Shown here: in pieces, positions 6,665-28,862 of the stretch | How positions within the stretch are numbered: position 1 is the first letter of the stretch | Layout of the letters: the number at the start of each line of letters is the position of its first letter | Assembly (NCBI RefSeq): GCF_000143415.4 | Contig: NW_003314271.1 | Span: forward strand, 1,167,955 to 1,196,816 | Direction of reading: 5' to 3' | Length of the DNA: 28,862 nt | Source: Selaginella moellendorffii | Lineage: Eukaryota > Plantae > Lycopodiophyta | Translations under genes and position numbers: made by a program | Notes under the pieces: model-generated | Seen by the model: only the letters and a program-made list of their open reading frames with translations | What the model was told of the DNA's origin: nothing | Database searches by the model: none

Positions 6665-6982
6665 TGTATCAACCAAAAACCCAGGCTTAGGGGACTCCGA
6701 CCTTGAACCCAGGGCTGCATCAGAGCCATAGATTAAATCATGCATAGCATATAGTATATGCTAGTAGTTAGAACCACTAGCCTTTCAAAGGGGGGAATCC
6801 AAATTGTGGATCCCTATCTCCATTCCATCATTTTTCTTATCAATACACAACATTTTCTTACTCGTGCTTCTTCTCAGCCCTTGGAGATCAGGCCCTTTTC
6901 TCTTTTGTTTTCTTACTAACAATAGATTTCCAGTGAAGAGGAGTTTTCACACCTCTTCACCCTCTTAGGTCAGGCTGTGACA
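6665..6982 (+). repeat. 3' LTR (~318 bp)
   Basis: Starts TGTATC after the purine tract and ends TGTGACA at the junction with the host pol. Contains a 9-bp stem GTGAAGAGG/CCTCTTCAC at 6933-6960. Confidence 0.65.
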
Positions 6983-8790
6983 AGAAATGTTTCGTTGCCA
7001 CATTATCCATATAAACTTTGAAATGCCTCCCAAGGTAATGTTGCCACTCCTTGAGTGCCTTGACCACCACAAATAATTACTTCTCGTGGGTAGGCCACCT
7101 TTGTTGAGCCTTGTCCAACTTCTTCGTGAAGAATGCCACTAGATGGTTATCTTGCTTCAAAACTACACTCAACACAAAGTCTGGAGCGTTCGTTTCTACT
7201 TCAAAGTCCTTACTAAAGTCTGGTAGCACCAACATAGGAGTCTTCCTCAACTTCTCTTTGAGGTGGATAAATATCGCCTCACATTCCACTATCTATACCA
7301 TCTTTGCTTTTCCCATTTGGTCCATTAAAAGCAAAGTTATTCTCAAATAGTGTTTAATAAACTTTCGGTAGTAGTTGCATAACCCTAAGAATACCCTTAA
7401 TTCATGTATATTAGATGGTCGTTCCCATTCTTGGATCACTTGGATCTTCTCAGGGTCCACCTTGAGCCCATCCTTGCCCACCACATGCCCAAGAAACTTT
7501 ACCTCTTATTGAGCAAAGTCATATTTGCTCTCTTTAACATGCAGTTGGTGTTCCCTTAGTTTTTCAAACACCTTTGTCAAGTGTTTGGCATGCTCCTCTA
7601 GTGTCTCGCTATAGATCAGGATGTCATCAATATAGACGACTGCGAAGTGATCTAAATAGGGTATAAAAATGTGGTTCATCAACACTGAAAACATTGCCAG
7701 CGCATTACACAGCCCAAAGGGCATCACCAGAAACTCAAAGCTCCCATACTTTGCTCGATAGATTGTCTTCTTGACATCTTCCTCTGCTATCCTGATCTGG
7801 TAATATCCTGACCTTAGATCCATCCTCGAGAAGTATTTTGCCTTTCCTAACCTATTGAACAAGTCCTCAATCCTTGGCAAAAGGTACTTGTTCTTTTTTA
7901 TATACTTATTGAGCAATTGGTAGTCTATGAATATGTGTATAGATCCATTTTTCTTTTTCACAAATAACACTAGTGCCTCATATGGCGACTTGCTCAACCT
8001 AATATATCCTTTATCCAATAACTCTTCTAATTGGCATTTGAGCTCCTCGAGTACCTTTTTGTTCAAACGATAGGGGGGACAAACCACTGCCTTAACACCC
8101 TCGACCAGCTTAATTTTATATTTTATCAATCGTGTAGGGGGTAACCCCACAGGTAGCTCCTCCGACATAGTATCTTGGAATTGGTCCAACACCCGCTGGA
8201 TCACTAAATGTACTTCTTTCGTTTCCATTTTTTTGTCACTCCTCATTGAGAATAAGCACAAAAATGCTGCCTTGATTCTTTTAGTGAGTTGTCCTCTTGT
8301 GGATACCAAGTTTAAACAAGAGTCTTTGGCCTTACATTGCTCTACCTTTAGATCTTGGGCCTCCACCCTGGATTTTTCTCCCCGGACATTTGCCAATACC
8401 ACAAGGTTCTTGTTTTGTCCATCCAGGGCTATTACGAACCGATTGAACCAATCCATCCCAAAGATTACGTCAAATCCTGCCATGTCCAACACAGTGAAAT
8501 CTATATCTACTTTCTATGTCCCTACTTTGACTTTAGCTTGTCGAAGTATCTCATCAATGCTTTGGTTACTTTGAACAAACTCTATAGTCTTTTGTTCGCC
8601 TAGCTGTTGCACCATTAGTCTGGCTTGCCAGACTATATTTGCAACCACAAAATTATCCGAAGGACTCGTGTCAATAAGAATCTTAACAAAGCTACCTCTA
8701 AGCTTCCCTCGGAGTGCTAGTAGATGTTGCAAACGACTCTCTACCAAAGTTGCTTGTGTAATGAATAACTTTGAGCTAAGGACTAGATCA
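6983..8790 (-). pseudogene. pol: pol: aspartic protease, reverse transcriptase and RNase H, with stops and frameshifts; integrase not in view
   Basis: LIDTSPSDNFV and FDVIFGMDWF (PR); LPRIEDL, DLRSGYYQI, VMPFGLCNA and VYIDDILIYS (RT); FLGLCNYYRKFI; LPDFSKDFEVETNAPD and AQQRWPTHEK (RH). Confidence 0.93.
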
Positions 8791-10655
8791 ATTTGGATTT
8801 CACCCAATTTAATGGTCATATTGGCTTTGGCCTTCTTTGGGTAGGGACATTCCCTCAAAAAGTGTCCTGCTTTGCCACAGTTGAAGTATATGTTGTTTTT
8901 CATGCTACTAGCAAATTTGACATTTTTATCCGTGGTTTTATCCCTTTACGCTTGACTCCCCCATATACTTGCTTGCTGGCCACCGGATCTGCCTTTCCGG
9001 AACCTTAAGGACTCATTCTTAGAGAAACTCTTCTTGAATTTCCCTTTGCCATATGTCCTCTTTGGTTTGGCCCTTTTGCTAAATGTGGACCTTAACCCCG
9101 TTGTGTTACCCTTTTGCAAGTTATCATCAAAATGCACCTTGATAGCTGCATCCAATGCTTCCTTGTAGTTGGTCGAGTTCCAACGCATCACCTCACTTCA
9201 AGCCCAAGTCTGCAAGCTTGATATGAAGGCATGGAATGCATCTATACCGCATATGTCTGTGATAAGGATCCTCTTTGCCATGAATGCATTCACATACTCT
9301 TGAATAGTTTCTGCTTGCTTCATCCTGCTCTGCTCATCACTTAGGTGTAAAGTAGCATTCGGTGGAACATAGGTTGCACAGATCCTCACCTTCATCATTT
9401 CCCAAGTAGCAACCGGTCCTTCATTGGCCTTTGTTATTTTTCACCAAGACTTAGCATTATCTACTAAGTATGGTTTTGCACATGGGACTTTCTTCGAACT
9501 CGATAACCACAACATTCGGAAGTAATCTTCCATATTGTAAAACCAATCCTCCACCACCTTATAGTCGTTCACTCCCTTGAAAACTAGTGGGGGGTTTGGT
9601 TTATACTTGGGAACTGCTTCGGGGACTGATTCCACTTTGGTTTGTTTGAATTTATTTAGTTCTGCCTCGGTCCCACTAAAGGGACCACGCCTTCTGCACT
9701 GCCAACCTCTGCAGTCTTTGGATTTTTCTTTCGCTTTTTGTCACACTTTAGCTTACATACGAGGGTCTCTAACAAGGCATTGGTCTATGTCAATTGTCCT
9801 TCTAGAATGTCCAATTAAGCCTTAGACGACCGAACCTCTCCACTAGACTTCTATTTGGAAGATTCCTCACTGGAGTCCTCCTCGTGCAAGGATTCTTCAT
9901 CCATATGTTTTTGTTCGACCAGAGGCTCCAGATCCGGAGGAAGTTCCGTCTGTAGCGCACCCTATTTCTGTCCCCTTAAGCCAACTGGAAAAGGGGCAAT
10001 TGCTTGATGAGAAAGCCCTTAGTGGCTATTTTATCCCTATTTATCCCCCAAGGTTCTAAGGATCCACGGTGATAGTATATCCAAATTTCATCCTATGATC
10101 ACATGCGCTATACTCACCCCCCTTTCAGAGATGTCAATGTCCTCATTGACTATTGACTAATAACCCCGACTGAGTCAAGGGGAACCAACACCTCCATTTC
10201 CGCACTCAATCTACCAATTGTGTAGACTAGCTATTCCATGTGAGACAACTAATCATCCACCTATACCGCAGTCCTATGGTGGATACTTTTGTCTGTAGAT
10301 ACTCCACACAAGAGGAAGGACGTACGCATGGATACCCAATGCGTATGATTTCAAATTTAAGGGTAGGAATATATCTTGCTCAAGGGTATATTATATTTGA
10401 AGTAACCACTAATCAATGGGAATCGAACCCATGCCATTTGCTCTGATACCAACTGTAGTGCACCTTTTCTCTCTCCCTTTAAGCCAACTGGAAAATGGGC
10501 AATTGCTTGATGAAAGAGCCCTTAGTGGCAATTTTATCTCTATTTATCCCCCAAGGTTTTAAGGATCCACGGTGATAATATATTCAAATCTCATCCCATG
10601 ATCACATGCACTACACCATCTCTGCTTTGATTCTTTTACGCCTTGCCTTTGCCAT
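8791..10655 (-). pseudogene. gag: gag with zinc knuckle, split by the TRIM at 9951-10615
   Basis: ATG at 10655 reads MAKARRKRIKAEM and rejoins ELPPDLEPLVEQ in frame once the TRIM and one TSD copy are removed. Also PPLVFKG..VEDWFYNMEDYF, QAETIQEYVNAF and the degenerate CCHC YFNCGKAGHFLREC. Confidence 0.85.
9951..10615 (-). mobile_element. TRIM (terminal-repeat retrotransposon in miniature), 665 bp, complete
   Basis: 162-bp LTRs at 9951-10112 and 10454-10615; PBS TGGTATCAGAGC (10440-10451, minus strand); PPT GAAAGGGGGTGAG adjacent to 10113; 5-bp TSD CCGTC/CCATC; no ORF. Confidence 0.93.
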
Positions 10656-10714: not shown

Positions 10715-11823
10715 TGTAAGCCATAAAATTTTAGCTTTCAATTTGCCAGTTTACCTCATCTATCTGACCAACACTACTTTGGCCTTAGTTAAGTTCCTTT
10801 ACCAAGGTTCCTGCCTATTACACCAACTCTTACTTAGTCCTACTTAGTTTCAGCTACTCACTGCACGAGCAATGAAGCGTTAACCAACCATCCATAGATT
10901 CCCAAATCTCTCCCAATCCCCCTCTAGACTTATGGTTCAATTACACTCCCCGCAGGCACAAGTAGCCAAGCCTCCAGGTTTTTAACATCCCTTGATACAA
11001 CAAGACTTGATCATAAGACCCTCTAAATCCCAAGCCTTGGGTGTAACATTCACTCTGGGGCACCAGGGGGAAACACTATGGCCTACCGGCCCAGTATGGG
11101 TACCTCTAGTCCCCCACTTCCATCCCGAAGGGAAGGCCCAAGCCCCTAGGAAGGGGCAAAGACCAATGAGCCATAAGGTACTCAAGTGGGGCACCACTCC
11201 ACATAAGCCGGGAGCACCGTAGTCGGTTTACCTTTCGAGAGTGGGAGTTGCTTTTGAGCACTTCCTTGGGTGGCCCCTCTGGCACCACCCGAGTCTATGC
11301 TCACTCCCACCCAAGGCCTCTAAGCACCAGTCTCAACCTCAAGTCAGTTTGGAAGCACCACTGGAGAGTTCCTTCAAGACTAGTTCCTAAACCTCACTAT
11401 TCCTATCATACTTTTGGAACTCCCTGCAGCCCCCCCACCCCCTTGGGAGACACGCTTTGGGCTTTCACCCCACGATCTGTATTAGTATTCGGACTCGATC
11501 TTGGACTCGATCTCAGACTCGAGCTCGAACCCAACCTCAGACTCGGTCTCGAACTCGATCTCAGACTCAACCTCAGACCCGATCTCAGACTTGACCTCGG
11601 ACTCGACCTCAGACTCAGTCTCAAACCCAATCTCGAATCTCAGACTTGGTCTCAAACTCGATCTTGAACTCGGTCTCGAACTCGGTCTCGGAGTCAGTCT
11701 CAGACTCGATCCCGGACTTTGTCTCGAACTCAGTCTCAGAGTTAGTCTTGGAGTCGATCTTAGACTCGGTCCCATCCGATGAACTCTTTATCATTTCGGT
11801 CGTGCTTTTGGGGATAGCCTACA
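10715..11823 (-). repeat. 5' LTR (~1.1 kb) of the minus-strand gypsy element
   Basis: TGTAAG...CTTACA termini; homologous to 16589-17314; contains a hexamer array and the GGGTGAAAGCCCAAAG / TCCAAAAGTATGATAGG core. Confidence 0.85.
11489..11776 (-). repeat. Degenerate hexamer array (GAGTCC/GAGACC/GAGATC type) in LTR U3
   Basis: 6/12-bp periodicity visible as ...gactcg atctca gactcg... on the plus strand. Confidence 0.85.
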
Positions 11824-13166
11824 ACACTTTAGGGAGTTGGTTCCTTACACATTGGTGATGATTGATTATCATCTAGGATAGTTGATTATTCTTGTCAAAA
11901 AGTTTTGTTTGATTATTATTGATCTAGAATTATTTGCCATTCTCGAGATGGTGGATTCTTTTTCTGACAATGATTATGTATCTCTCTTTTGATGGGATGA
12001 TTAATGATCTTTCATGATATTTAGTTATTCTTCTTGATAGCTTATGGTTTTTCGCATTACCACATGTTCTTTGTGGTTTGCTCTGGATTGGTTTTTTGGG
12101 TTTGAGATATCGGTAGGATGTTGCTAATGCTTTCTTAAGCAACTTGAGTTCCTTAGTATTATTGACTAAGATCTATTTGGATTAACTAATGCAATAGTTG
12201 GTGTGAAAAAGTGTTTGTTTGCTTTGCAACATTCATTCTGTTCTGTTGATTGTTGTTTGAGTTAGTTTTCATAGATTTGGATGTTATTTCCTTTGGGTGA
12301 TACATTCACAAGTATTTTACTTCTTAGTCGATGATACTTTGTGTTCTTTAAATTATCTTTAGTAAGTTGTTTGGCATACTATTTATAATCTTTGGTAATT
12401 AAGCTTTATCATTGAGTTTTCTCAATGATACACTTGTTATCAAATTTTGTTGGATGGTAAATCCTATATTTTCCAACTATAGTGATTTTGCTAGATCCTA
12501 TACTCTAATACTCATTTATCAGATGATAACTTACTTGGAATACTTTTATGTTCTAAACTAAGCTTTATTCACTGATAATTAAGTCTTTAAGATATCATTG
12601 TCTATGACTTTGATATTGTCGATCTATTAATCTTTAAGTTTGGGCTAGTATAGGCAGACTGGCTTCGGCACTTTGTGTGCATGATGAAATCTCTAGTCAT
12701 GGGGTAACTACTGTCAACTGGTCATATCACCCGCCTCTTTGTCGATGTTCCTTATTCTGTTAAAAGGGTGTGACCATGTAAACAATTCTAACTGCCTATT
12801 TACAATAGTCTATCTAAACGTTACTGACGGGTTTGGTTTCTTTGCTCATGAGGGTTGGGGCCTTTGACTTCTCTCTCTATGTCTTTGCGGGTAGGGACAT
12901 ATTACACTTTTGTAAGCTAGGTGACACCCAGAGCAGCAAGAGTGGCTAACTCCGTTGGTCATTTCCTTGCCAGCGACGGCTAGAAGGTGTTTGAGCTGGT
13001 AGCGCATCCGCGTCAGACAAAGAGGTTGCTTCCTAACTGATTTAAGTTGTTGCATTTCTCACATAGTGTGATCACTGTGAACTTTTTCTAGAATTGTTTC
13101 CTTGGCAGTGCTCTAGACTAAAGTATGCATCGACGAGGACATCGATCTTCCCTAAGGGGGGAAGAG
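11824..13166 (+). pseudogene. Old, AT-eroded gypsy integrase (possibly plus chromodomain) relic ending in a PPT
   Basis: Only fragmentary integrase-like peptides are readable. A clear GAGGAC motif and PPT AAGGGGGGAAGAG (13154-13166) are followed by TG. Confidence 0.5.
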
Positions 13167-14277
13167 TGTTGCGAATGTGACTTCGGGTATCGAAAATTAT
13201 CTGTCAGTTGGGTTCTCTTTATCAGCCCGTCTTATTCAAGTGTTGGTATACTGGGCTTAGCATCTGTACTTAGTCAGATGGACATAAGGTAGGAACTCTT
13301 ATGTGTTTTTAGCTGAGCATTCTCGGCCTGGCTCTTAGTTCTCTTTTGCTCTGTCTTGCATTGGCTTGGCAAGAACCCTCACGTATTGAGACTAGTCCCT
13401 CAATATCGTTGAATGATAGCTTACCATATTTGCCAAACACCCTCGCTATCATGCCTTTTGTGTTAGTCTCAATTTGGTCCCAAATGCTATTTATGGAAAA
13501 TGTCAAAATTTGCTCATTTGGCATATCTATAGAATGTAGATATTGTCCTGAACACAATAGTGTTCATCCCATGTCCAAATTCGCAATCTAGGGACATTCC
13601 ATATTTAGTAAGATTTAAGTTTGTCCCAAAGACTAACTCCTGATACTAAGGGAGGTTTGGGGTGAAAGCCCAAAGTTTGTGTTCCTGAAGGGGGGAGGGG
13701 GGTGGGGGTTGTGGAAAGTTCCAAATGTATAATAAGGATAGTGGGTAGGTTGGGTATGGCCAACTAAACTGAGGTATAGTTTAACTCCCACTTGCATGCC
13801 TGTCTTTGTTCTGCATCTAGCTTGGGTCTAAGCCCAAGTTCCACACCATGTTAGTTACCATACTAGTTAGTGGAGTACCTATATCCTCGCATGAGGCCAC
13901 CGGTATGCTAAAATAGCACCAGACTCCATTTGGCTCCGTTTTGCGTGTTAGTCCTAGTGTTGGGATGCTAGATGCTCTAGGACTCCTCCAAGTCACTCTA
14001 TGCTCCTGTCCCTTCACTCTTTGGGCTATATGCTCAGGAGTTACTCCATGGTTCGGTTCCATCACTCCTAGGCTCCATGCTTGGGAGTTGGGCTCTGTTA
14101 TTTCATTCAGCTACCCAAGGCCCTAAAACTCAAGTTCTATTCTACTATCCTTTAGACACATGGCATGTGGCATGTGGCATGTGACATGTGGCACATTGGA
14201 GGGTTTAGGTTCTGCTTCATGGTGTTATCCTATAGTAAAATACCATAGGATAAAGGGTAAAAACCACGTGTGCTACA
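13167..14277 (+). repeat. 3' LTR (~1.1 kb) of the old gypsy element
   Basis: Starts TGTTGCGAATGTGAC directly after the PPT; its 5' end aligns with 19111 (TGTCACAAATATAAC...GAAAATTA..TGTCAG), and ~13720-14050 aligns with ~19157-19465. The 3' end at GTGCTACA is tentative. Confidence 0.7.
14158..14196 (+). repeat. 7-bp tandem repeat (CATGTGG)n, ~5 copies
   Basis: catggcatgtggcatgtggcatgtgacatgtggcaca. Confidence 0.85.
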
Positions 14278-14449
14278 ATTGTTATTTCCAACTTCTATGG
14301 CATGTGATTACATAGTGTCTTTTATTCTTGGTGTCCTTCTGTCTCAAATTGATGTAGAGTGTCATTATAACATCAATTAAAGAGTTATAGATGATAAATT
14401 TTTGATTTTGGAGAATATTTGAAGAGTGAATTTATAGGAAGATGATGTT

Positions 14450-14673
14450 TATGAGCTTGAATGGATTTCTGCTAATAGGGAATTCAATGTAAGTAACAAC
14501 TCAAGAGACAATCCATAGGGGTTTAAATATAAAAGGAAAAGGGCTTATGAACAAGGGTGCACCTCTTTTTTCAATTAGTTAAGAGTTTTGAAATATTTAG
14601 GGTTAAACATTCTTGGGTTTGAATAATACTGGGTTGGATGACCTCCAGGGAAGTCTTAATTCAGAAACTTACA
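14450..14673 (+). mobile_element. Cassandra-like LTR fragment carrying a 5S rRNA internal-control-region segment (copy 1)
   Basis: 14601-14657 GGTTAAACATTCTTGGGTTTGAATAATACTGGGTTGGATGACCTCCAGGGAAGTC matches plant 5S GTTAAGCGTGCTTGGGCGAGAGTAGTACTAGGATGGGTGACCTCCTGGGAAGTC. TATAAAAG lies upstream and the repeat ends CTTACA. Confidence 0.7.
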
Positions 14674-15599
14674 TTCAATTATTTTAAAGATAGTTTTGAA
14701 TGTAAGTTAGTCATTTTGCAAGGTAAATATTAATCCTTCAATCTACTATCTTACTTTTTCCCAACATTTTATTATTTCTAGGCCTAAGCCACCTTCTTAT
14801 ATTCATAGTATTTTTTCTTCATTTATGGTATTTCCTTCTTCTAGCACATTAGTCATTTATGACTCTTATAATTCTCATTCTCAATTTGATATTAAGTTAA
14901 GTATTTTTTATCCTCCTTATACTAATTTAAATGTTGAGCATATGTGTGAAGCTGAAAAATCCTGATTTTGTTTCGTTAGCAAAGTTTTTTATTAGAGTTT
15001 TCTTTTGTTCCATGGGTTTAGTCACTTTTAATAGAGTTTTAAGTTGAATGCATGTCCCTAGTTGTGGGTGCCGCTAAAAGCCTTTTGTTTTTATTTCTAT
15101 TGAGGGTGTTGATATTTTTATTAATTTTCTCACTTCAAGTGTTGAATTATATGTTGAGGAGGTTGAACAATGTGAATCTCTTGCTTACCTTATGATGGTT
15201 GAAATATTTTATAATAGGACATCCCCTATTTTCTAAGTTCTTAGCATATTTCTTTTTTCTTATCTCTCCTTTTCCACTTTAATAGCTACTAAAAATTCCT
15301 CTTTGATGCTTCTTTATTCATTTTTTTCCATAATATTTCTTTCTTAATTTTTCTTACTTTCTTCTCTTCAAACATTTTTTTCTTCAGAGGAGAGGGTAGA
15401 GGGGACGAACAGGAGTCTGGCCCAAATGATGGAGTGAAGACAAACAAATATAGTAGTGGAGCGAGGATGAACAACATAAATTATGGAGTGAAGACAAGTA
15501 TAGTGAATCTGAATGAAACTTTCAACCTCAACATAGTGAGGCCAAATGGATATAATAGTGGAATAAAGCCAAACATAAATGGTAAAATGAGGACAAGTG

Positions 15600-15814
15600 C
15601 AATAAGTTTGAATGGAATCAGTGTAAGCAACCAAAGGGAATGATTTAAAAGACAGTCCATAGGGTTCAAATATAAAGGGAAAAGGCCCATGAATAAGAGT
15701 GCACCCCTTTTCTAATCGATTAAGGATTTTGGGATATTTGAGGTTAAACATTCTTGGGTTTAAATAGTACTGGGCTGGGTGACTTCCTGGGAAGTTAAAA
15801 TTTAAGAGTTTACA
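15600..15814 (+). mobile_element. Cassandra-like LTR fragment carrying a 5S rRNA segment (copy 2)
   Basis: 15742-15796 GGTTAAACATTCTTGGGTTTAAATAGTACTGGGCTGGGTGACTTCCTGGGAAGT; direct repeat of ~14450-14673; ends TTTACA. Confidence 0.7.
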
Positions 15815-16588
15815 ATTAGTACTTCAAAACTTTTTTTCCTTCTCCAAAAGGATAAAAAGAATGTGGAGAACAAACAAAGTGAGTCTAACTTCCCATATGT
15901 GGTGTTTGATGAGGACAAAAGTTAAAAGTCTAAGTTAATATAGGTTTTAAAGGTTTACCAAAATGAAAATATAGAAGTAGATTTTGCTAATGGTCGTGAG
16001 TTTGAGTTTATAGTGGTCTCAGAGAATGGTTGGTAGGCAAACTTAAAGATAGAATGTATCATTTACCATAATGATGTTTTATGGACTATAATAACTTTTG
16101 AAGTCCCTTTGACATGAACCACAAGAATATTTTTAAAATATTCTATGGCTTGTGGGATTTAAGGCTGTTAACACCTTAAGGGTTGAGAGGTTAGTCTAGG
16201 GTTCACTCTTTGTTTGTTTCATTGGTATCGAAGTAACATGTTCTTTTAAGGATGGTGGAGGAGTGAGATATAGATTCTAATAAGGAGTATAGTGTTAGTG
16301 ATGATGGCTATGATGAGGAGGATGAATCTCTTAATGATGTTGTCGTGGTAAGGTCTCCAGATTTGTAAGGTTCAAAGTGACATTAAAGAAGTTAAGGATT
16401 CTATCAATCTCATTAAAGATTTCCTTCTTCGCATGAACCCTCAAGGGTTGAATCAATCTCATGTCTGTGATTACTATTAATATGTTAAACATGTTAAGAA
16501 TTATGGTATCATGGAATGGAAGTCATCACCAAATGTTTGTGGTAACCAAGAAGTTGATTTTTGGTTGGAATCGTGGAAAAGTTGTTGG

Positions 16589-17314
16589 TCTGTAGGGGGT
16601 TCCAAAAGTATAGTAGGGATAGTGAGGTCCAGGAACCAGTCTTGAAGGAACTCTCTAGTGGTGCTTCCAAACTGACTTGAGGTTGAGACTGGGGCCGAGG
16701 GGCCTTGGGTGGGAGTGAGCATGGACTCGGGTGGTGCCAAAGGGGCCACCCAAGGAAGTGCTCAAAAGCAGCTCCCACTCCCAAAAGGGAAATCGACTGC
16801 GGTGCTCCCAGCTCATGTGGAGTGGTGCCCCACCTGAGTACCTTGTGGCTCATTGGTCCTCGCCCTTCCTAGGGGCTTAGACCTTCCCTTCGGGATGGAA
16901 GTGGGGGGGTAGAGGTACCCATACTGGGCCGCTAGGCCACGCTGTTTCACCCCGATGTCCCGAAACGAGTGTTGCACCCAAGGCTTGGGATTTAGAGGGT
17001 CCCATGATCAAGTCTTGTGGTACCAACGGATGTTAGGAACCTGGAGGCTTGGTGTGTTTAGCTGCTTGTGCCTGCGGTGAGTGTAGCCGAACCTTAAGTC
17101 CAGTCTAACTTGGGGAGGGGGATTGGAAGAGATGTGGGAATCCGTGGATGGATGGCTAATGCTCTGTTACTCGTGTAGTGAGTAGCTAAAACCAAGTAGG
17201 AGCTGGTACAATAGGCTGGAACCTTGGCAAGGGGACTTAGCAAAAGCCAAGGTAGTGTTGGTCGGATAGACAAGGTAAGTTGGCAAATTGGAAAGGAAAA
17301 ATTTATAGCTTACA
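16589..17314 (+). repeat. 5'-truncated solo LTR of the same family as 10715-11823
   Basis: Reverse-complement homology to ~10715-11430; ends GCTTACA; no PBS follows; the U3 hexamer array is missing. Confidence 0.85.
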
Positions 17315-17901
17315 GTTTTGTGATCTTTGCCTTAGTCTCACAAGCACTTATAATAAGCTACTAAAGGTGCAATATTTCATTAAAGGTTTGAGCTCAGGGA
17401 ATGTGTAGCAAAAGGTCAAGAAGGATTTTCCCACAATGTTGATTGATGCTATCACAAAGGCTCAGATCTTTTCCCCTAAACTGTCAATCAACTTCGTCAA
17501 ATTTGGTCAATAGGATGGTCTACATGGTAGTTAACATGATGACCAACCCACCAATGCTTCATATTCAAGGAAGAAACAACTGTTGTTCCATTGTGGCTCA
17601 AAGAGTGGAGATGGTCACGAGGCCAAAAAAAATTATTTGGACCAACATGAGAAGGATAAGGTGGAGGGTAATTGTTTTCTTTGTTATAAGGCTAGACATC
17701 ATAGCAAAGATTGTCCTCTTGGGAAGGGATCAAAGAATGCTAAGGTGAATGTGATGGAATTTATTATGGATATAGCTCAAATATCTGTTGTGGTGACTCT
17801 TCCACACCCTGTGGCAAAAATTCAAGAATCTAAATCTCAAGTTCATATCAACTTTGTAAAGTTTAATGGTTCTATACTTGATTAACTTGTGAAGGTATAT
17901 G

Positions 17902-18499
17902 TGTAATGCATGTGATCATAGGATGAAATTTGGATATACTGTCACTATGGATCCTTGAAACCTTAGGGGATAAATAAGGATAAATTAGCCATTAAAGGCT
18001 CTCTCATCAAGCAATTGCCCTGGAGAGAGATAATGTGTGTTATATGTGGTATTAGAGCAAATGGCATTAGTTCAATTCTCATTGATTAATGGCTACTTAA
18101 AATATAATATACTTTTGAGTAAAGTATATTCCTACCTCTAAAAATTGAAATACATATTAGGCATCCATGAGTATGAAATAGTTGATCTACACAATGGAAA
18201 GATTGGTAAAAATACGAAAATCAATGTGCTAATTCCCCTCGTCTTAGTAAGGGTTGTTATACTAGTTCCCCATGGCTTAGTAAAGGTTGTTAGTCAATAG
18301 TTAATGAGGACATTGACATTTTTTAAAGGGGAGTGAGTGTAATGCATGTGATTATAGAATGAAATTTGAATATGCTGTCACCATAAATCCTTGAAACCTT
18401 GGAAAATAAATAGAGATGAAATAATCAATAAAGACTCTCTTATCAAGCAATTGCTTCTTTTCCAATTGGTTTAAGGGGAGAAAAATAGAATATACTATA
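17902..18499 (+). mobile_element. Second, older copy of the TRIM family
   Basis: LTRs at 17902-18044 (with ~19-bp deletion) and 18338-18499 (162 bp); PBS TGGTATTAGAGC at 18047-18058; PPT AAAGGGGAGTGAG; many C>T and G>A changes; no clean TSD. Confidence 0.88.
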
Positions 18500-19110
18500 C
18501 CAAGGGGGACATTTAGGATCATGTGATTAGTATTCTTTTCAATCTAGAAGCTACACACAATTTTTTGAGCTCTAAGGTGGTGAAAAAACTTAGTTTGCTT
18601 ATGGAAAAGAATTTAGTAATCTATGAGGTGGTTATCACAAATGGATGTAACACTTGTGTTTATGGTGAATAGACTATAAGTGTTCCTTTGACGATTCAGG
18701 GGATTCTTGACCATCTTTCATTTTAGGTTATGGATCTTGGTTGTACAGATGTTATTCTTGGGAAGGAATGGTTTTATGAAAGAAAGTTAAGGATTGATTG
18801 GGAGCATAATGTTTTACATATCAAAGCTAGTGGCACTGTGAAAGGGATTGTTAGGATAGATAACAATGATACTCTATTGATTAATACTTTGGAGTTAGTG
18901 ATTTGCACATATGAAATAGCTAATTATTTCGTGGTGTACCTGTTTCTTTCTAATATAATCATGTCTAATTTGGAGTATATTTATGGGCATAGGGCTTAGG
19001 TGCTTCCATTCATGAGAAGTTCTGTGAGGTATTTCCGGATGAATTGCCTAATGGTTTGCCTCCCGCCATGGAATTCAACATGAGATTGACTTAGTTCTTG
19101 GAGTTACTCT

Positions 19111-19480
19111 TGTCACAAATATAACTGTAGGTATTGAAAATTACTTGTCAGCTAATCCAAATATATAATAGGGATAGTGGGTAGGTTGGCATGGCCTACT
19201 AACATAAGGCATAGTCTAGCTCCTACTTGTGTGTTTATCCTTGTTCTGCGTCTGACTTGGGTCTAAGCCTAAGTTCCATATTATATCAGCTAGTGGAGTA
19301 TCTATATCCGTTAAGCCACCAGTATGCTAAAATAGAGCTAAACTTTGTTTGGCTCTGTTTTGCATATTGGTCCTAGCATTGGGATGCTGAATGTTCTAGA
19401 ACTGTTAGAATTCACTCTGTGCTTTTATCCCTTGGCTCCTTGGGCTCACTTAAGAGTTATTCCATATATCAATACCTTTG
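19111..19480 (+). repeat. LTR of the 13167 family, internally deleted and cut by the insertion at 19481
   Basis: Aligns with 13167-13210, then jumps to ~13720-14050. Confidence 0.75.
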
Positions 19481-22400
19481 TGTGAGACACAAAATCCCTA
19501 GGCCCCAAAGTGGAGCTGAAAGGGTGCCACGTGGTAGTGGCCGAAGCAAAAGCCAAACAAGCGTAACACGTTTGGACTAAAAGCTCCGACTTGAAAAGGT
19601 CGAGAGTGGGAGTGGAACTCCCAATGAAGTGCTCGAGGAACAAGCATGAAGTGAAAGATAAGTGAGTATCTAGAAAAAGGATACAAGAGGACCGACACAT
19701 GAAATGTGGAAGAGTCCGAGATGGAGTCCGAGATGGACCGAGATGGAGTCCAAGGTCGAGACCGAGCCCGAGACCGGGATGGAGACGGGCTCGGTCTAGG
19801 GTTTGGGAGACGAACGCTTTGGGCTTTCACCCTCGGTCTCGGTCTCGGTCTCGGTCTAGGGGGTTTGGTGAGCTCCAAAAGTATAGTGAGGGGGAAGACT
19901 GCAGTGGAGCCAGTTTGGCCAAGAAAGGCCAGTTTGGCCCAGAAAGGCTGTACCCAGTGTTGGGTGATGAGCTGCCCACTGGGAAGTCCAAGACTAGAGT
20001 GAACACAGACCGACAGGGTAGCTTGGTGAAGTGTTCAAGAGCCGGCTTTAGTTCCCCTGGGAGATCGATGCTCCCAATCCAAGTGTGGGTGGCACTACCT
20101 ACTTGGATACTTAGTGTGGCTCAATGGAACCTCGCTCTAAGCCCATGGCTAGAGCACCCAAAGGCAGAAGGCAAGGAGAGTACCCACGAGGCTTGCATAG
20201 GGCCACGGTGTTCTGAAATGTTGCCCCAAAGTCCCAGATTGTGGAAAGGAAGAAGAGTAGCCCTCTGGTGTGGTGACAAAGGACACAGTCACACAGTGAG
20301 GAAGTCCCAAAGGACAGTTGGACTTAGTGGTCGGGCCTGTAGGCCTTGATCCAGTGGCAGTGTTGGTGAACACCGCCATGGACAGGAAGGGACTTGGTGG
20401 GGACTGGAAAGGAGACATTGGGGAAGGCTATTCCCCATGTCTGCAGGCATCCTAAGGATGCTATAGAGTGGATCTGGGATAGCCACTCATGGATGGATGG
20501 CCTAGTCTTTGAGAAACGGGATTGAAATGCAGGTGGTGTTGGACCACCGATGTGACCAAGGTGAATGGGCATGGCCTAGCATAACGGGCTGGTATGTTGG
20601 TGGTACCTTGGGGTGTCGGTCATAGAATCGGACATGTGGAGCACTTGGACCAAGTGCAAAGGTTGAGTGGCATAGATGCCATTCTCGGGGTTAGCAAGCC
20701 CCAAGTTCTGAATGGGACTTATGGAGGTTGTGAATGAGACTCCTCCAAGTGGTCGGAGGTGCAATTAAATGACTACAGTAGAATAGAAAATTTAGCCACT
20801 TACAACTTAGTATCGGAGCTGTTCCTTAGTCTGACTCTTATTGGTGGCCAAGTATATCACCACTTGTATTGGAATAGAAAGGTCCTAGGTATGGACCTAT
20901 CCTCGAGGAGTAGCATGGTGAGAGGATATGGCTCCCCACTCAAGTTCATGTATGAACTTGTGCGCAATGTGGTGGATGGAAAATGGCCAAAGGGAATGAC
21001 TTTGGGATCTTGGGAATAGTATAAAGGTTTCCTCAGAGAGTTGAGGATGTGATCCAGATGAGCGTTTGACGCAGCAAACGGGCTAATGTAGTTGTGGTAA
21101 ACAACTATAGTTGGGATCACGGGGAAGATGCAGACTCCAAAAACAATAAAGGAGTCACAAGATTACCCTCATATAGTGAAGGCTGGTGCTCATAAATTTG
21201 AGACCGGAATTGATGACTGAGGGAGGTCAAATACGAAAGAGGACACAAGTCCTTGAAATGGTAGCCAGGACTACCTCTAATAAATGCGGGAACAACCCAA
21301 GGAGTTAGGGGTGTACTTAGAGGATGAGTTGGTATTCTCATCATATGGACAGGTGGTCCTAAGGGGCAAAAGGTTGCTCCCAGAGAATAAAATCAAGTGT
21401 TGGAATAACACTGATAATGGTGGTCCTGGTGAGTAGGACATGAATACAAAAAGTTGTATTCCAGTGAGCCGGCACCTCAAAAGTAAAACTTTATAAGTCG
21501 GGGGATTAGGAAAATTCCAAAAGGCTGAATGACTTAAGTGGACTCAAGAAATAGTCCTAAAGGACTGATGGAAGCATTCTGACTGAGGTGTGTTGTGCCC
21601 CATGAAGGATGGGGAGGATCATAAGATCCAAGTATGAGAACAGTGGGTATCTCATGGGTGGCAAAATGTGCCATACTAAAGTCGTGGGAAAGGTGTTCCC
21701 AGAAGAAGTAACTTTGGTGCAGAGTTGTGTGCGAACACTATGGTGTAGTGCTAACGGATAGTTGGCATGAGAAACGACTAGGTTGGTCTTGGCAAAGACC
21801 TAGACACAAGTGCAAAGTGTCATAAAGGCAAACTCATGGAGCTGATGGTATGGAGACACCAAATGGGCTAAGGTGTGATACCTTCAGGTTATGTTGATGG
21901 GTTCATGAGAACCCCTTGCCAAGGGAATCCCAATAGAAATGGGAATGGCATAGCCTAAGCTGGAAGGCATGTGGTAGAGTGTGGTTACCTGGATAATGAT
22001 GGAGGTGTGGAAGCACCAGCAATGAGTTGTAGGACTTGACAATAAGGCAACTAAGCAGGAGGTGCAAGTAATTGGTTAAACGGGTAGAAGGTAGCTACCC
22101 AAGACTTCTTAAAGTTAAATATACCCTTATCGAGGATAAGTTGTTTATGTTGCGATATAGTAAGTCAATGTTGTAAAAGGAAATGCTCATTGTCAAGGAG
22201 GCCATCATTGGGACACCCAAACACTCTAGAACACCAAAAGGTGGTGTTTAATGTCGCAAGGGCAATAGATAAGGCCCAAGGGACAAAGTCTCTGGCGAAC
22301 GATGGATAAAAGGTGCTATCCAAATATCCAAGGTTGTGGAGACGGGAGAAGTCCGTCTACCCAAATTGGACAAAGCCAAAGAGGGATTTTGGCAAAGCTA

Positions 22401-23117
22401 GTGATGGGCATATAAAGGCCCATAAGTGGCAACGGTAATCCCAGTGTGTAGGATTACAAGGTGAGTATACCCAAATTGAGGAACCACTCCCTAAGCTGTC
22501 GGGTAGGTTCATACCAAGGCATGGTAGAAAGTGCAAAGCTATCTTCTTAGTTTGGAGGAGAATGACAAAAGGAAATGTATGAGGCCAAAAGGCAAGTAGT
22601 AAAGGGATAAAACTGAACCATAAGAATTGACAAGCATGACCAAGAATGGCAAAGAAAAGAGCCATGGGAATCATGGGATAGAAGCCAAATGGCAAAGTTA
22701 GTCCAAGAACACTAATGTGTTGGACGCTAACAGATTATGCGAAGGCAATGTGTTTCCAAGGATAAATTCCCAATTGCTCCGATTTGGCGAAGGTGGAAGC
22801 TCCAAGGGATGGAGTGGTAAAGTAGCCAAATGGTAGGGCCATGGACAACCCTAGCACGAATTACAATAACTGGAACTTAGTGCCAAGGGTGGCACGATAT
22901 CGAAGAGAGGATGATGGTGCCCTTAAATAAAGAACTTCCTAGGACGGGAAGTGGAGTTGCACTATGTGCAACGTAAGGTGTCGAAGACACCTAGGAAATT
23001 GACTCTGAGAAGTCAAAATTAAAAGTTCCAAAGTGCAAAAGTTATGTTGATGGAATCTGAGACTACTCGAGAATGAGTAGTGGAATTGAGTTAGAGAAGG
23101 GGTCTCTAACGGGTTTA
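19481..23117 (+). mobile_element. LARD-like LTR element with no recognisable coding sequence, copy A (5' LTR 19481-20804, PBS, internal region), interrupted by copy B
   Basis: TGTGAG...CTTACA LTR; PBS TAGTATCGGAGC at 20808-20819; internal region collinear with 24844-28660 but lacking ~26700-28180; no gag/pol motifs seen. Confidence 0.85.
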
Positions 23118-23347
23118 TGTGAGACACAAAATCCCTAGGCCCCAAAGTGGAGCCGGAAGGGCGCCACGTGGTAGTGGCCGAAGCGAGAGCCAAATGAGCG
23201 TAACACGTTTGGACCAAAAGCTCCGACTTGAAAAGTCAAGAGCGGGAGTGGAACTCCCAAAGAAGTGCTCGAGGAATGAGCACGAAGCGAGCCATAGGCA
23301 AGGCTCCAAAAAGGGACCCAAAACGGACCAATATATGACACGTGGAA

Positions 23348-23840
23348 GAGTCCGAGATGGAGTTTGAGATGGACTCCGAGATGGACCCGAGATGGAGTCC
23401 GAGATGGAGTCCGAGATGGAGTCCAAGATGGAGTCCGAGGTGGAGTCCGAGACGGAGTCCAAGGTGGACCCGAGATGGACCCGAGATGGAGTCCGAGATG
23501 GAGTCCGAGATGGACCCGAGATGGAGTCCGAGATGGACCCGAGATGGGCACGAGATGGAGTCCGAGATGGAGTCCGAGATGGACCCGAGATGGGCACAAG
23601 ATGGAGTCCGAGATGGAGTCCGAGATGGACCCGAGATGGAGTCCGAAGTCGAGACCGAGACCAAGACCGAGACCGGGGCCGAGACCGAGACCGAGATCGG
23701 GACCGAGACCGAGACCGAGGCCGAGGCCGAGACCGAGCCCGAGCCCGAGTCCGAGTCCGAGTCTGAGTCCGAGTCCAAGTCCGAGTCCGAGTCTGAGTCC
23801 GAGTCCAAGTCCGAGTCCGAGTCCGAGTTCGAGTCTGAGA
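23348..23840 (+). repeat. Compound hexamer array in U3: (GAGATG-GAGTCC/GACCC)n, then (GAGACC)n, then (GAGTCC)n
   Basis: Directly visible, ~490 bp; it produces stop-free frames on both strands. Confidence 0.95.
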
Positions 23841-23906
23841 GGGTGAAAGCCCAAAGCATTCGTCTCCCAGACCCTGGGGGGTGAGCTCCAAAAGTATAGT
23901 AGGGGG
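23841..23906 (+). promoter_or_regulatory. Putative LTR core promoter (GGGTGAAAGCCCAAAG, G-run, TCCAAAAGTATAGTAGGG)
   Basis: The same motif order recurs in otherwise dissimilar LTRs at ~11400-11471 (minus) and 13660-13738, and in part at 16595-16620, 19157-19175 and 19815-19895. Confidence 0.55.
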
Positions 23907-24831
23907 AGGACTGCAGTGGAGCCAGTTTGGCCAGGAAAGGCCAGTTTGGCCCAGGAAGGTCAGACCCAGTGTTGGGTGATGAGCTGCCCACTGGGAAGTC
24001 CAAGACTAGAGTGAACACGGACCGACAAGCGGGGTAGCTTGGTGAAGTGTTCAAGAGCCGGCTCTAGTTCCCCCGGGAGATCGACTGGCCGATGCTCCCA
24101 GTCCAAGTGTGGGTGGCACTACCTACTTGGATACCTGTCGTGGCTCAACGGAACCTCGCTCTAAGCCCATGGCTAGAGCACCTAAAGGCGAAAGGCGGGA
24201 GAGTACCCATGAGGCTCGCGTAAGGCTACGGTGTTCCGAAATGTTGTCCCAAAGGCCCAGACTGTGGAAAGGAAGAGGAGCAGTCCTCTGGGGCAGTGAC
24301 CAAGGATGCAGTCGTGTGGTGAGGAAGTCCCAGAGGACCTTGGGACTTAGTGGTCGGGCCTGTGGGCCTCGATCCAGTGGCGGTGTTGGCAAACACGGCC
24401 AAGGGCAGAAAGGGACTTAGTGGGGACCGGAACAGAGATATCGGGGAAGGCTATTCCCCACGTCTGTAGGCATCCTAAGGATGTTAAGGAGTGGATCTGG
24501 GATGATCACTCATGGACGGATGACCCAGTCTTTGAGAGACGGGATTGGAATGCAGGTGGTGTTGGACCACCAGTGTGACCAAGGTAAATGGGCATGGCCT
24601 TAGCGTAACGGGCCGATACGTCGGTGGTACCTTGGGGTGTCGATCATGGGATCGGACACGTGGAGCACTTAGACCAAGTGCTAAGGTTGGGTGGCATGGA
24701 TGCTATTCTCAGGGCTAGCAAGCCCCAAGTCCTGAGTTGGACTTATGGAGGTTGTGAATGAGACTCCTCTAAGTGGTTGGAGGTGTGGTTAAGTGACTAA
24801 AGTAGAATGGAAAAATTTGTCGCTTACAACT

Positions 24832-24843
24832 TGGTATCGGAGC
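24832..24843 (+). promoter_or_regulatory. tRNA-iMet primer binding site
   Basis: TGGTATCGGAGC, 3 nt after the LTR end; complementary to the iMet tRNA 3' end GCUCUGAUACCA with one G-U pair. Confidence 0.88.
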
Positions 24844-27258
24844 TATTCCTTAGTCCGACTTTTATTGGTGCTCAAGTATATCACCACTAGTGTTGGCATC
24901 GGAAGGTCCGAGGAGTGGGCCTATCTTTGAGGAGTAGCAAGTCAGGAAGACATGACTCTCCATTACAGTTCATGTGTGAACTTGTAGACGAGGTGGTGGA
25001 TAGAAAAGGGCCAATAATGGAACGACTTTGGGATCTTGGGAACAGTGCAAGGTTTTCCTCATTGAGTTGAGGATGTGATCCGGATGAGCATTTGTCTCAG
25101 CAAATTGGCTAAGGTAGTTGTGGTAAACAACTATAGTTGGGATCACGGGAAAGATAGAGACTCCAAAACAATAAAGGAGTCACAAGATTATCCTCGTATA
25201 GTTGAGGTTGGTGCTCATGAATGTGAGACCAGAGGTAATGACCGTGGGAGGTCAAATACGGAAGAGGACTCAAGTCCTTGAAATGGTAGCCGGGGCTACC
25301 TTTAATAAATGCTGGAACAACCTGAGGAGTTCGGGGGTGTACTTAGAGATGAGTTGGTATTCTCATCACATGGACAAGTAGTCCTAAGGGGCAAAGGTTG
25401 CCCATAGAGAACAAAATCAAGTGTCAGAGTAACACTTGTGAAAATAGTCCTTTTGAGTAGGACAGGAATGCAAGAAGTGTATTCCAGTGAGCTAGTGCCT
25501 CACAAGTAGGACCTTACGGGTCTATGGATTAACCAAGTCCAAAATTGCTGGATGACTCAAGTAGAGTCAAGGGATGGTCCTAAAAGGACTGATGGAAGCA
25601 TTTGGATTGAGGTGTGTTATACCCCACAAAGGATGGGGGGGGATCATAGGATCCAAGGATGAGAACAAAGGGTATCTCATCGATGGCAAAATGTGCCATG
25701 CTAAAGTCGTGGGAAAGGTGTTCCCAAAAAGAAAACAACTTTGACACAAAGTTGTGTGTGACCTCTATGATGCAGTGCTAACAGATGGTTGGCATGAGAA
25801 AGAGTGGTATTGGTCTTGGCAAAGACTTAGACACAAAGAAGAAGTGTCATAGAGGTAGGCTCGTGGAGCCGATGGTGTGGGGACACCGAAGGTGCCAAGG
25901 TATGATACCTTGAGGCTATGTTGGTGGGTTCATGAGAACCCCTTGCCAAAGGAATCCCAATAGAAATGAGAATGGCATAGCCTAAGCTGCAGAGCATGCA
26001 GTTGGAGTGTGGTGACCCAGATAATGATGGAGGTGTGGAAGCACCAGCAATGAGTTGTAGGACTTGACAACTACGAGGCAACTAAGCAAGAGGTGCAAAA
26101 TAATTGGTTAAACGGGTAGAAGGTAGCTACCCAAGCCTTCTTAATGGCATAGGGAAGTTGGATATACCCTTACGGGGGATAAGTTGCTTACAGTTGCAAT
26201 ATAGTAAGTCAATGTCGTAAACGGGAATGCTCATTATCAGGAGGCCATCATTAAGACACCCAAACACTCTAGAACACCAGAAGGTGGTGTTTCATGTCAC
26301 AAGGGCAATAGATAAGGCCCAAAGGACTAAGTCCCTAGCGAATGAGGGATAGTAGGTGCTATCCAAATGTCCGAGGTTGTGGAGACAAGAGAAGACTGTC
26401 TACCCGAATTGGACAAAGCCAAAAATGGAATTTTGGCAAGGCTAGTGGTGGGCATGTAAAGGCCCATAAACAACAACGTTAATCCCGATATGTGGGATTA
26501 TAAGGTGAGCATGCCCAAGATTGAGGAACCACTCCATATGCTATCGGGTAGGTTCATCCCTAAGAATACTTGCTAAGGCATAGTAAAATGTGCAAAGCTA
26601 TCCTCCTAGTCTGGAGGAGAATAACCAAAGGAAACATAGGGGGCCAAAAGGCAAGTAGTATTGGGATGGAACTGAACCATAGAAATCAAAGGGCATATCC
26701 CACAGTGGTTATGCAAGTTGGGAGTGGAGAATCAAGAGGGTGCTTGAGGATGTTGTTGCTAGCAACCGTGATGCCATGGAGAGTCTAAAATATGGAATTG
26801 TCCATGTTAGACTATATGGCAACTATAAAGCTTGCGAAAAGGGAGGCCTTAGCAAGCTGAGGGACAGAGTTCCTTCAAGGTTCCCAAAGATGATTCTAGG
26901 TAGCTTAGTACCTAGAAAGGCCAAGTGTAAATGGTTCATGGAACGCGCGAAATTAGAGTGGCGCAGCAGAAGCGTGGTCTTGAAGCTTGCCATGAGGCAA
27001 GGCTATCAAGGTTAGGGAAGTAGTTCCCGAGTGTTCAAAGAGATAGCTTTGAATGAAAGTCAATGGTCAAGGACTTTCACGCTTATGCAGGAACCATGTT
27101 ACAGTGGTCGGAGGACTTGCCAAGCGAGATTGGCACGTCGGGGGAACAAATACCCTAATTGAAGGTGATAACTTCAAAAAGGGTGGGCCATGGGGCCGAG
27201 CATGGAGGAGTCCATGCATGATCACAGACATGTCAAGTGAGAGGACTTGGCAGTGCGG

Positions 27259-27834
27259 AGGAACTAGGTTCCTAAGCTGTGATCTGTAGCGCGCTTTAAA
27301 TATAGGTTGGTGCACCGGCGTGGGGAGTCACGCCAGGCATCTTGTGTGATGCCGTCCGTAGATGCATATACGGAGGTTGGGTTCGAGTCCCGACCCTCTA
27401 GTGCTTGGGTTCGAGTCCCAAATCACTAGGGCGTGGTGATGGTTTGGAATATGAGGACACTCATATTTCGGTGGTCATGGACTCTCAGTGGGGAGACTGG
27501 TTTGGGCACACCGCCAAGCGAGGGATGCCTCGGAGTCGTGATGCACGGTTAGATTGCTTAGTGTGAAAGTTTGGCATATCTAACTTGAACGCTTTGGTGC
27601 AAGTGGCACCAAGGACGTGGTGAGTGAGATGGGGACACCTAATCTCAGTTGCTATGGACCCTTGGCCGGAAGGGCTGGCTTGGGCGCACCGCCAAGTGTG
27701 GGGGATGCCCCCGGGGTCGTAGTTAACAAGTTAAAGGTCTGGAAAACCTAGTACCTATTGGCAAACCTGTTAAGGTGCCGAGGTGAGATCACTAGGTGAT
27801 CTTGTGGCTAAATAAGGACAAGGTCCTTGTTTGG
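27259..27834 (+). ncRNA. Candidate highly structured cis-acting RNA domain within the LARD-like element
   Basis: More than 15 adjacent stem-loops readable by eye, two GGGTTCGAGTCCC T-arm mimics and a duplicated four-way junction with compensatory substitutions. Confidence 0.55.
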
Positions 27835-28750
27835 GTTAAGGAATAAGGTTCCTAGTTCAAAGTGTTGATTTGAACTATTGATGATGGTGTAACTTGGTCA
27901 AGGTCACCAAGTGGGAAAAGCACCTTAGGGAAATGAGCTATGTCATTGCGATGGCATAGTGTGTCCAAGGAAAGTAGTCTCTAAAGAGACCCATGGGAGG
28001 GTCACAAAGTTGGGCCGTGGATAGAGCCCATAGCAGAAGGTGCTAAAAGAGACTTACTACGGGTGAACACCCTAGTCTTGGCAAAGCCGAGCCTTTGCTA
28101 TGGAATCAAAAGAATACCTCAAGGAGGGAGGTAGAGATTCGATGTTGCTTAGTGCAACAATCAACGGATAGGAGCAAAAGATGAGTGGCCAAGATAGGGC
28201 CGTGGAATCCCTTGGAAGGAATCCAAGTGACAAAGTTAGGCGAGGAACACTAATATGTTGGACGCTAACAAATTGTGGGAAAGGAAGTGTGTTTCCAAGG
28301 ATGGATTCCGAATTGCTCCAATTTGGCGAAAGTGGAAGCTCCAAGGGAGGGAGCGGTAAGGTAGCCAAACGATAGGGCCATGGACAGCCCTAGCACAAAG
28401 TATGATAAATGGAACTTAGTGCCCAAGGTGGCCCGAAATAGAAGAGAGGATGATGGTGCCCTCAAGTAATGAACTTCCTAGGATGGGGAAGTGGAGTTGC
28501 ACAATCTGTGCAATGCAAGGTGTTGGAGACACCTAGGAAATTGACTTCCAAAAGTCAAAAGAGTAAAAGTTCCAAGGTGCAAACGTTCAATAGATGGAAA
28601 TTGAGACTACTCGAGAAGGAGTAGTGGGATTGACTTAGAGAAGGGTCTCTAAGAGGTTTAGCGAGAACTAAACCAATAAAAGGAGAGAACCACTACATGT
28701 GGTCCAATCAGTCTCTAAGTTGGAGAGACTACCCTCCTTAGAGGATAGGC

Positions 28751-28862
28751 AAGGCATGGTGAGCCTTTGGTGTCAAACCATTGAGGAATATGCAAAAGGC
28801 ATGGTGAGCATTCAATGTCAAACCATTGACAAATATGGAGAAGGCATGGTGAGCCTTCAATG
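28751..28862 (+). repeat. 45-bp tandem repeat (at least 2.5 copies), running off the window
   Basis: AAGGCATGGTGAGC starts at 28751, 28796 and 28841. Confidence 0.9.

Follow-up and report, generated by a model that had tools for sequence, protein, structure and literature searches.

Abutting stem-loops at 27259–27430 as one part of a hairpin array in a LARD-like LTR retrotransposon

We analysed a 28,862-nt stretch of DNA (hereafter the window) in which an earlier note had singled out 172 bases, positions 27259–27430 on the plus strand, as a hairpin cluster resembling transfer RNA (tRNA) arms and retroviral packaging signals within a non-coding long terminal repeat (LTR) element. We hold with moderate confidence that these bases form an unexceptional part of the non-coding interior of an LTR retrotransposon that resembles the large retrotransposon derivatives (LARDs), and that the stem-loop array to which they belong acts in the plus-sense RNA of the element. 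The cluster itself is real and beyond chance. All of the stems and palindromes listed in the note were found where it had placed them, and RNA folding of the plus strand gives six independent hairpins in both the minimum free energy (MFE) structure and the centroid. The note had proposed comparing the fold with dinucleotide shuffles: against 200 of these, the plus strand, at −68.1 kcal/mol, has z = −3.32, and the minus strand, likewise against 200, has z = −4.24. One stem, ATCTGTA/TATAGGT, is present in the sequence but is weak, because it occurs in the MFE structure only and is absent from the centroid. Local retention of CpG, also claimed in the note, is borne out by an observed/expected ratio of 0.90 (11 CpG), compared to 0.12–0.75 in neighbouring 172-nt windows. 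CpG retention was also considered as a cause of hairpin integrity and was rejected given the weak correlation between the two (rho 0.20, p 0.18).

Self-comparison of the window reveals two direct copies of the host element with 85% identity, copy A starting at 19481 and copy B at 23119 (Table 1). Both copies have LTRs of 1.3–1.7 kb with TG...CA ends (TGT...ACA), and in both a 12-mer matching a primer binding site (PBS) lies 3 nt beyond the ...CTTACA end of the LTR. The reference form of this 12-mer, TGGTATCAGAGC, is found exactly at 10451–10440 on the minus strand of the window, upstream of the gag gene of a Ty3/gypsy element, and also about 40 nt before gag in L030 and in L033 (Vitis), which are elements of other plants. 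Because it precedes gag in all three elements, we read it as the PBS, and we take it to be of the tRNA-iMet type. The sequence TGGTGCACC at 27308 was considered as a second PBS and dropped, the actual PBS being at 24832. Protein similarity was sought throughout copies A and B and none was found, and 120 plant protease (PR) and reverse transcriptase (RT) proteins gave no match to 19481–28862 with tblastn. The longest open reading frame (ORF) in 26600–28300 has 98 aa (cutoff 40 aa), and the interior of copy B contains none of 120 aa or more; for a 216-aa ORF in copy A, neither a Pfam family nor a homologue was found, and a look-up gave no existing record of it. Since it combines an LTR, a PBS, and a multi-kilobase interior without coding capacity, the host is, as judged from its sequence, a LARD-like non-autonomous LTR retrotransposon, in agreement with the ORF-less LTR element described in the earlier note. 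The 3′ LTR and polypurine tract of copy B lie beyond the window end (28862), and copy A ends at the LTR of copy B. Further copies of the element were sought in five plant loci (L030, L033–L036) and none was found.

The cluster lies 2.4 kb 3′ of the PBS of copy B, within a 1.48-kb stretch (26690–28180) that is present in copy B only. The composition and hairpin density of this B-only stretch match those of the remaining interior, and a check for the hallmarks of insertion found neither a repeat structure nor a tail nor evident duplication of a target in it. Because the stretch resembles the rest of the interior and bears no such hallmarks, a deletion in copy A is the simpler reading of the difference between the copies. 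Separately, a 12-nt unit, GAGTCCGAGATG, forms arrays at 19712–19784 and 23348–23840, close to the 5′ part of each LARD-like LTR, and an inverted array of the same unit occurs at 11444–11771, upstream of the LTR body of the gypsy element. The presence of these arrays in both hints that the LARD-like and gypsy families share an LTR architecture.

The assignment of the cluster to a larger array follows from the distribution of hairpins along the element. We defined a perfect hairpin as a stem of at least 6 bp with a loop of 3–10 nt and took the expected numbers from dinucleotide shuffles. Each kilobase of 20001–28862 contains 8–15 perfect hairpins, compared to 1–2 in shuffles, and the remainder of the window contains 0–4 per kb, save for 13001–14000. 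The interior of copy B has 53 perfect hairpins against 5.5 expected and that of copy A has 29 against 3.1, a 9.5-fold excess in these interiors. When stems of at least 5 bp are counted, about 170 hairpins can be listed over several kilobases, beginning a few hundred bases inside the LTR and continuing until the window ends. The stems of this array in copies A and B are 5–9 bp long, the loops are 3–10 nt long, and the hairpins directly abut in places, for example at 27259–27440 and 28497–28730. Among 69 element windows of 120 nt, the mean MFE z is −1.8 on the plus strand and −2.1 on the minus strand, compared to −0.1 to −0.4 elsewhere. Perfect inverted repeats are about 10-fold above chance at spacers of 3–8 nt only and reach background by 12–13 nt; a peak restricted to these spacers is therefore the signature of hairpin loops, and of neither palindromes nor long-range pairing. 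The loops consist of 35% A, 36% G, 19% T, and 10.5% C (70% purine), compared to 61% purine in the linkers, which are likewise poor in C. In the element, stretches of four or more T occur twelve times less often than in the rest of the window (0.56 versus 6.7 per kb). Periodicity and internal duplication were sought in the B-only 1.48 kb and neither was found, and we therefore consider the stems of the array to be unrelated in sequence.

Two local features of the array record small-scale changes. At 28751–28862, a 45-bp tandem repeat of 2.5 copies, which continues past the end of the window, carries two short hairpins per unit; as read from the sequence, this shows that the array can grow via duplication of hairpin units. 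At 24082–24089, copy B has an 8-nt insertion relative to copy A that is an inverted copy of the adjacent bases and forms a new hairpin, and this insertion looks like a template-switch event.

We infer that the array acts in the plus-sense RNA polymerase II transcript, which would be the genomic RNA primed from the PBS that we take to be of the tRNA-iMet type. Purine linkers would be unable to pair with one another, leaving every hairpin to fold locally. The plus-sense RNA would display hundreds of purine loops, with duplexes that never extend beyond about 9 bp. Such exposed loops would lend themselves to multivalent binding by an autonomous partner's zinc-knuckle Gag, and such short duplexes would avoid the formation of long double-stranded RNA. 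In one retrovirus, a single-stranded purine loop has been reported as a Gag binding site (PMC8096270).

The cluster at 27259–27430 is not set apart from the array around it. Its hairpin coverage is 0.56, compared to an element mean of 0.35 and a maximum of 0.72, and 6% of sliding windows have coverage equal to or above that of the cluster. The flanks carry an equal hairpin density on both sides, leaving the cluster without edges, and windows at 26971–27210, just 5′ of it, have z scores of −5 to −6, which are stronger than its own. These results bear on the proposal in the earlier note that the 172 bases are a dedicated dimerisation or packaging module, in which a self-complementary loop and a purine tetraloop would admit an ORF-less element to helper particles. 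The proposal finds some encouragement in the stable hairpin at 27355–27374, whose 6-nt palindrome lies in the sole self-complementary loop of the cluster, in the GGAG loop at 27317–27334, in the local retention of CpG, and in the PBS and non-autonomous nature of the element. We nevertheless regard a dedicated module as very unlikely, as the stretch has no boundary against its flanks in hairpin density or z, lies 2.4 kb from the PBS and not in the leader, and is absent from copy A together with the whole of the 1.48 kb around it. The supposed likeness to retroviral signals also failed to emerge from element-wide counts: GGAG is present in 5 loops, compared to 6.9 expected from loop composition, and the 25 palindromes of 8 nt in 9 kb are not above chance. 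Within the cluster, folding does not display AGCGCGCT and GGTGCACC in stable loops. Loops with a 6-nt palindrome number 5 (4 of them independent) across the element, compared to 1.5 ± 1.1 expected.

The T-arm look-alikes at the 3′ end of the cluster require separate consideration. Both are real, and each contains an exact match to the B box of RNA polymerase III (Pol III) promoters (27380–27390 and 27408–27418), but they make up one 28-nt duplication (TRF period 28, 2.1 copies, 81% matches; 82% identity between units) with no wider tRNA around it. Two of the hairpins in the cluster arose through this tandem duplication of a T-arm-like hairpin. A third look-alike is located 9 nt 3′ of the exact gypsy PBS (10440–10451). 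With the B-box consensus quoted in the earlier note, a motif that was picked after the fact, the window contains 3 exact matches where 0.05 would be expected, and none of 100 shuffles yields as many; no match is found in the LTR of either copy A or copy B. The T-arm likeness is real, unlikely to be due to chance, and recurrent in the lineage, but it belongs to no tRNA-like whole. A scan of metagenomes with the tandem T-arm pattern yielded 29 loci (L001–L029) without similarity to the window, and their context looks mostly like bacterial tRNA 3′-end duplications or short T-arm-like tandem arrays.

Two explanations take these look-alikes as their starting point. The first, raised as an alternative in the earlier note, treats the cluster as a unit transcribed by Pol III or as a tRNA-derived short interspersed element (SINE) that inserted independently. 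This is extremely improbable even though two B boxes (27380 and 27408) and a TA-rich stretch (27296–27305) speak in its favour, because ARAGORN predicts 0 tRNA genes and Rfam returns no match in the entire window at the gathering threshold, nor any in 27100–27600 at E ≤ 10; these models of whole tRNAs also take in the place where an A box would lie. A search of 26600–28862 found no run of four or more T, and thus no T-run terminator within 1.4 kb. In addition, the stretch missing from copy A is 1.48 kb of the same hairpin-array sequence, without the repeat, tail, or target duplication mentioned above.

The second explanation is that the look-alikes are a working tRNA-mimic motif of the retroelement lineage, at which a T-arm-recognising factor or RNA might dock or, on the DNA, TFIIIC might bind. 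The number of exact B boxes in the window points in this direction, as do the stem of 5–7 bp and loop of 7 nt that are common to 3 of 3 look-alikes and the position of one of them directly after an exact PBS, and non-autonomous LTR elements with tRNA-like motifs are known (Helenus, PMC10886601). However, both copies in the cluster stem from a single duplication event, and the look-alike after the PBS is absent from the relatives L030 and L033, which have the same PBS, and is decayed in the plus-strand gypsy copy and in copies A and B. Considering also that ARAGORN and Rfam found no further part of a tRNA and that the motif was selected after the fact, we think it quite unlikely that the look-alikes work as tRNA mimics.

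The reading of the array as functional in plus-sense RNA can be examined by comparing copies A and B, which share 3531 aligned columns; the cluster's own stretch, being present in copy B only, is outside this comparison. Hairpins at homologous places are still present in both copies. Stems defined in one copy diverge by 0.085–0.09, compared to 0.16 outside stems. Stem conservation was considered as proof of selection and rejected, because ascertainment of stems in one lineage alone predicts this halving of divergence. Double changes that preserve Watson-Crick pairing number 7 and 4, compared to about 1.6 in controls with slid partners, which suggests a weak compensatory signal between the copies. 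In the best-kept shared segment (22925–23118 versus 28465–28660), 0 of 53 consensus pairs are broken, a count to be read with the knowledge that RNAalifold favours unbroken pairs by construction; one of these pairs shows a compensatory change and five have changed on one side only, all to or from G.U.

Several observations weigh against a function of the array. Hairpins are retained in 31 of 69 and 27 of 64 cases, compared to 26 ± 4 and 25 ± 4 in a neutral simulation. Single changes to G.T versus A.C on the plus strand occur in ratios of 38:30 and 5:1, neither of which is significant, with counts that are underpowered. Folding z is equal on both strands (p = 0.2), leaving no strand signature. 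The window holds only two copies of the element, one of which, copy A, is without the stretch that contains the cluster, and the window's own broken gypsy element is without hairpin excess (1.3-fold). As far as their sequences indicate, copies A and B appear to be dead and to be decaying roughly neutrally. The argument for a function is founded on how large the hairpin excess itself is and on the form it takes.

An origin without function is possible, although we do not think it probable: the array could be a mutational by-product of inverted micro-duplications and of quasi-palindromes being "corrected" through template switching while the element is reverse transcribed or replicated, in sequence under no coding constraint. 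Such processes would fit a folding excess that is equal on both strands, stems that are mainly perfect Watson-Crick duplexes, and a decay after the split of copies A and B that looks neutral. They would also fit the 8-nt insertion at 24082 in copy B, which makes a hairpin from an inverted copy of adjacent bases, and the local tandem duplication of hairpin units at 27377–27432 and 28751–28862. However, neither the old non-coding DNA nearby (14201–19100) nor the related gypsy LTR and leader has an excess. In addition, the purine bias peaks in the loops (70%, compared to 61% in linkers), which a strand-symmetric DNA process does not predict, and the intact coding regions of relatives, where insertions would do harm, have a 2–3-fold excess. 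The test for insertions is based on just 4 indels of 4 nt or more and has no power.

The gypsy elements provide a wider context for the plus-sense RNA reading that we favour. The best relatives of the RT ORF in the window are all plant retrotransposon proteins, with at most 60% identity. The coding regions of four related gypsy loci from other plants have 1.9–3.2-fold more perfect hairpins than shuffles, compared to 1.2–1.6-fold in the flanks of these loci, with the exception of one downstream flank at 2.6-fold (L034 13000–21539). A second Vitis gypsy copy has an excess of 1.1-fold. Together with the larger excess in the interiors of copies A and B, these values hint that hairpin-rich genomic RNA may be a trait of the lineage that grows extreme where coding no longer constrains the sequence. 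A bolder proposal is that the lineage builds its whole non-coding genomic RNA from approximately 25–30 autonomous stem-loops per kb, with purine loops and linkers, and that selection has favoured this RNA as a ligand that Gag binds multivalently or as protection from silencing. Under this proposal, chromovirus-like relatives would show the same trait, less strongly, in their coding RNA, and the T-arm mimics by the PBS and in the interior would be tRNA-related docking sites. We consider the proposal in this full form rather unlikely.

The host element and its array can be compared to several known systems. As in LARDs (Kalendar et al. 2004, as cited in PMC7215508), a long LTR element has a PBS and a multi-kilobase interior without gag or pol, and its reliance on an autonomous partner is presumed. 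For LARDs, RNA secondary structures that are conserved have been described (PMC7215508). The element is likened to the named LARD families by description and not by sequence. It differs from LARDs in its shorter LTR (1.3–1.7 kb) and in its dense chain of about 170 unrelated hairpins with purine loops. Helenus, Cassandra, and Ajax, which constitute TRIMp3, are miniature terminal-repeat retrotransposons (TRIMs) with a Pol III promoter derived from a small RNA in the LTR (PMC10886601). Helenus and other TRIMp3 elements resemble the present case as non-autonomous LTR retrotransposons with a tRNA-like motif; however, theirs is a whole tRNA-like or 5S-like sequence in the LTR of a very short element (about 1 kb), whereas here only a T-arm-like hairpin is found, duplicated, without a terminator, and in the interior of an element that measures 5.7 kb or more. 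The packaging and dimerisation signals of retroviruses and LTR retrotransposons likewise consist of stem-loops with exposed purines, and one self-complementary loop is found here, but those signals are discrete and located in the leader beside the PBS, in contrast to an element-wide array in which motif frequencies equal those given by composition. Finally, tRNA-derived SINEs share the B-box consensus, but here there is no tRNA-like fold, tail, target site duplication, or terminator, and the surrounding 1.48 kb shows the host element's own architecture. A literature search for a hairpin-array retroelement of this kind found no description of one.

The significance of the array depends on its origin. 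If it has been selected, it would show how the RNA of a retrotransposon without proteins is organised to compete for helper particles, and its signature of short perfect inverted repeats, purine loops of 3–8 nt, and no T-runs could be used to scan other sequences. If it instead arose as a by-product of mutation, template switching in the course of retroelement replication would have left a visible footprint in it. Whichever holds, annotation of the region as a tRNA, a SINE, a Pol III gene, or a retrovirus-like packaging (Psi) or dimer initiation site (DIS) should be avoided.

Table 1. Positions of the cluster, its host element, and related features; window coordinates unless a locus is named
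Feature	Position	Strand	Basis or remarks
Cluster of 6–7 abutting short stem-loops, one part of the element-wide array	27259–27430	+	sequence, folding, hairpin listing
Stem AGGAAC/GTTCCT	27259–27273	+	read in sequence
Palindrome AGCGCGCT	27288–27295	+	read in sequence
Palindrome GGTGCACC	27309–27316	+	read in sequence
Stem GGCGTGG..TCACGCC with GGAG loop	27317–27334	+	read in sequence
Stem GGCATC/GATGCC	27336–27353	+	read in sequence
Hairpin TCCGTA/TACGGA, 8-nt loop holding the 6-nt palindrome ATGCAT	27355–27374	+	sequence, folding
T-arm look-alikes	27375–27395 and 27398–27429	+	read in sequence
28-nt tandem duplication, each unit with a T-arm look-alike	27377–27432	+	5–7-bp stem, 7-nt loop
Third T-arm look-alike	10416–10432	−	5-bp stem, 7-nt loop; exact B box 10419–10429
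Copy B LTR	23119–24828	+	starts TGTGAGAC, ends CTTACA; includes 12-nt array 23348–23840
Copy B PBS	24832–24843	+	one difference from reference 12-mer
Copy B non-coding interior	24844–28862	+	at least 4.0 kb; continues past window end
B-only 1.48-kb stretch	26690–28180	+	holds the cluster; no counterpart in copy A
Copy A LTR	19481–20804	+	starts TGTGAGAC, ends CTTACA
Copy A PBS-like 12-mer	20808–20819	+	two differences from reference 12-mer
Copy A interior	20820–23118	+	stops where the LTR of copy B starts
Gypsy gag zinc knuckle, protease, RT, and RNase H region	6927–8903	−	3–4 in-frame stops; single frame, no frameshift in the stretch compared
PBS of Ty3/gypsy element	10440–10451	−	exact 12-mer
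Decayed inverted second copy of gypsy LTR and leader	16587–18870	+	PBS 18047–18058; coding remnant 18478–18870
Hairpin-rich coding regions of relatives	L030 8359–12142; L034 8681–12961; L033 8453–15002		2–3 times shuffles

The window as a whole reads as plant nuclear DNA, because it contains an interstitial telomere-like repeat, a Ty3/gypsy gag-PR-RT region, and an RT whose best relatives are all from plants. The telomere-like repeat is of the plant type (CTAAACC × 4.9) and is located at 330–362. Ten ORFs of the window were looked up in a protein collection, and none had an entry. Side by side at 1657–4116 on the plus strand are ORFs of 345 and 466 aa, the second of which matches Pfam DUF7869 (E 4e-43); this pair may be part of another mobile element. 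A repeat of about 330 bp is present at 13720–14050 and at 19156–19475 with 76% identity; its second copy directly abuts the start of the LTR of copy A, and the second gypsy copy (16587–18870) is cut off before the repeat. The segment at 13001–14000 is also rich in hairpins, with 10 compared to 1.8 expected, yet these are without the purine bias of the array.

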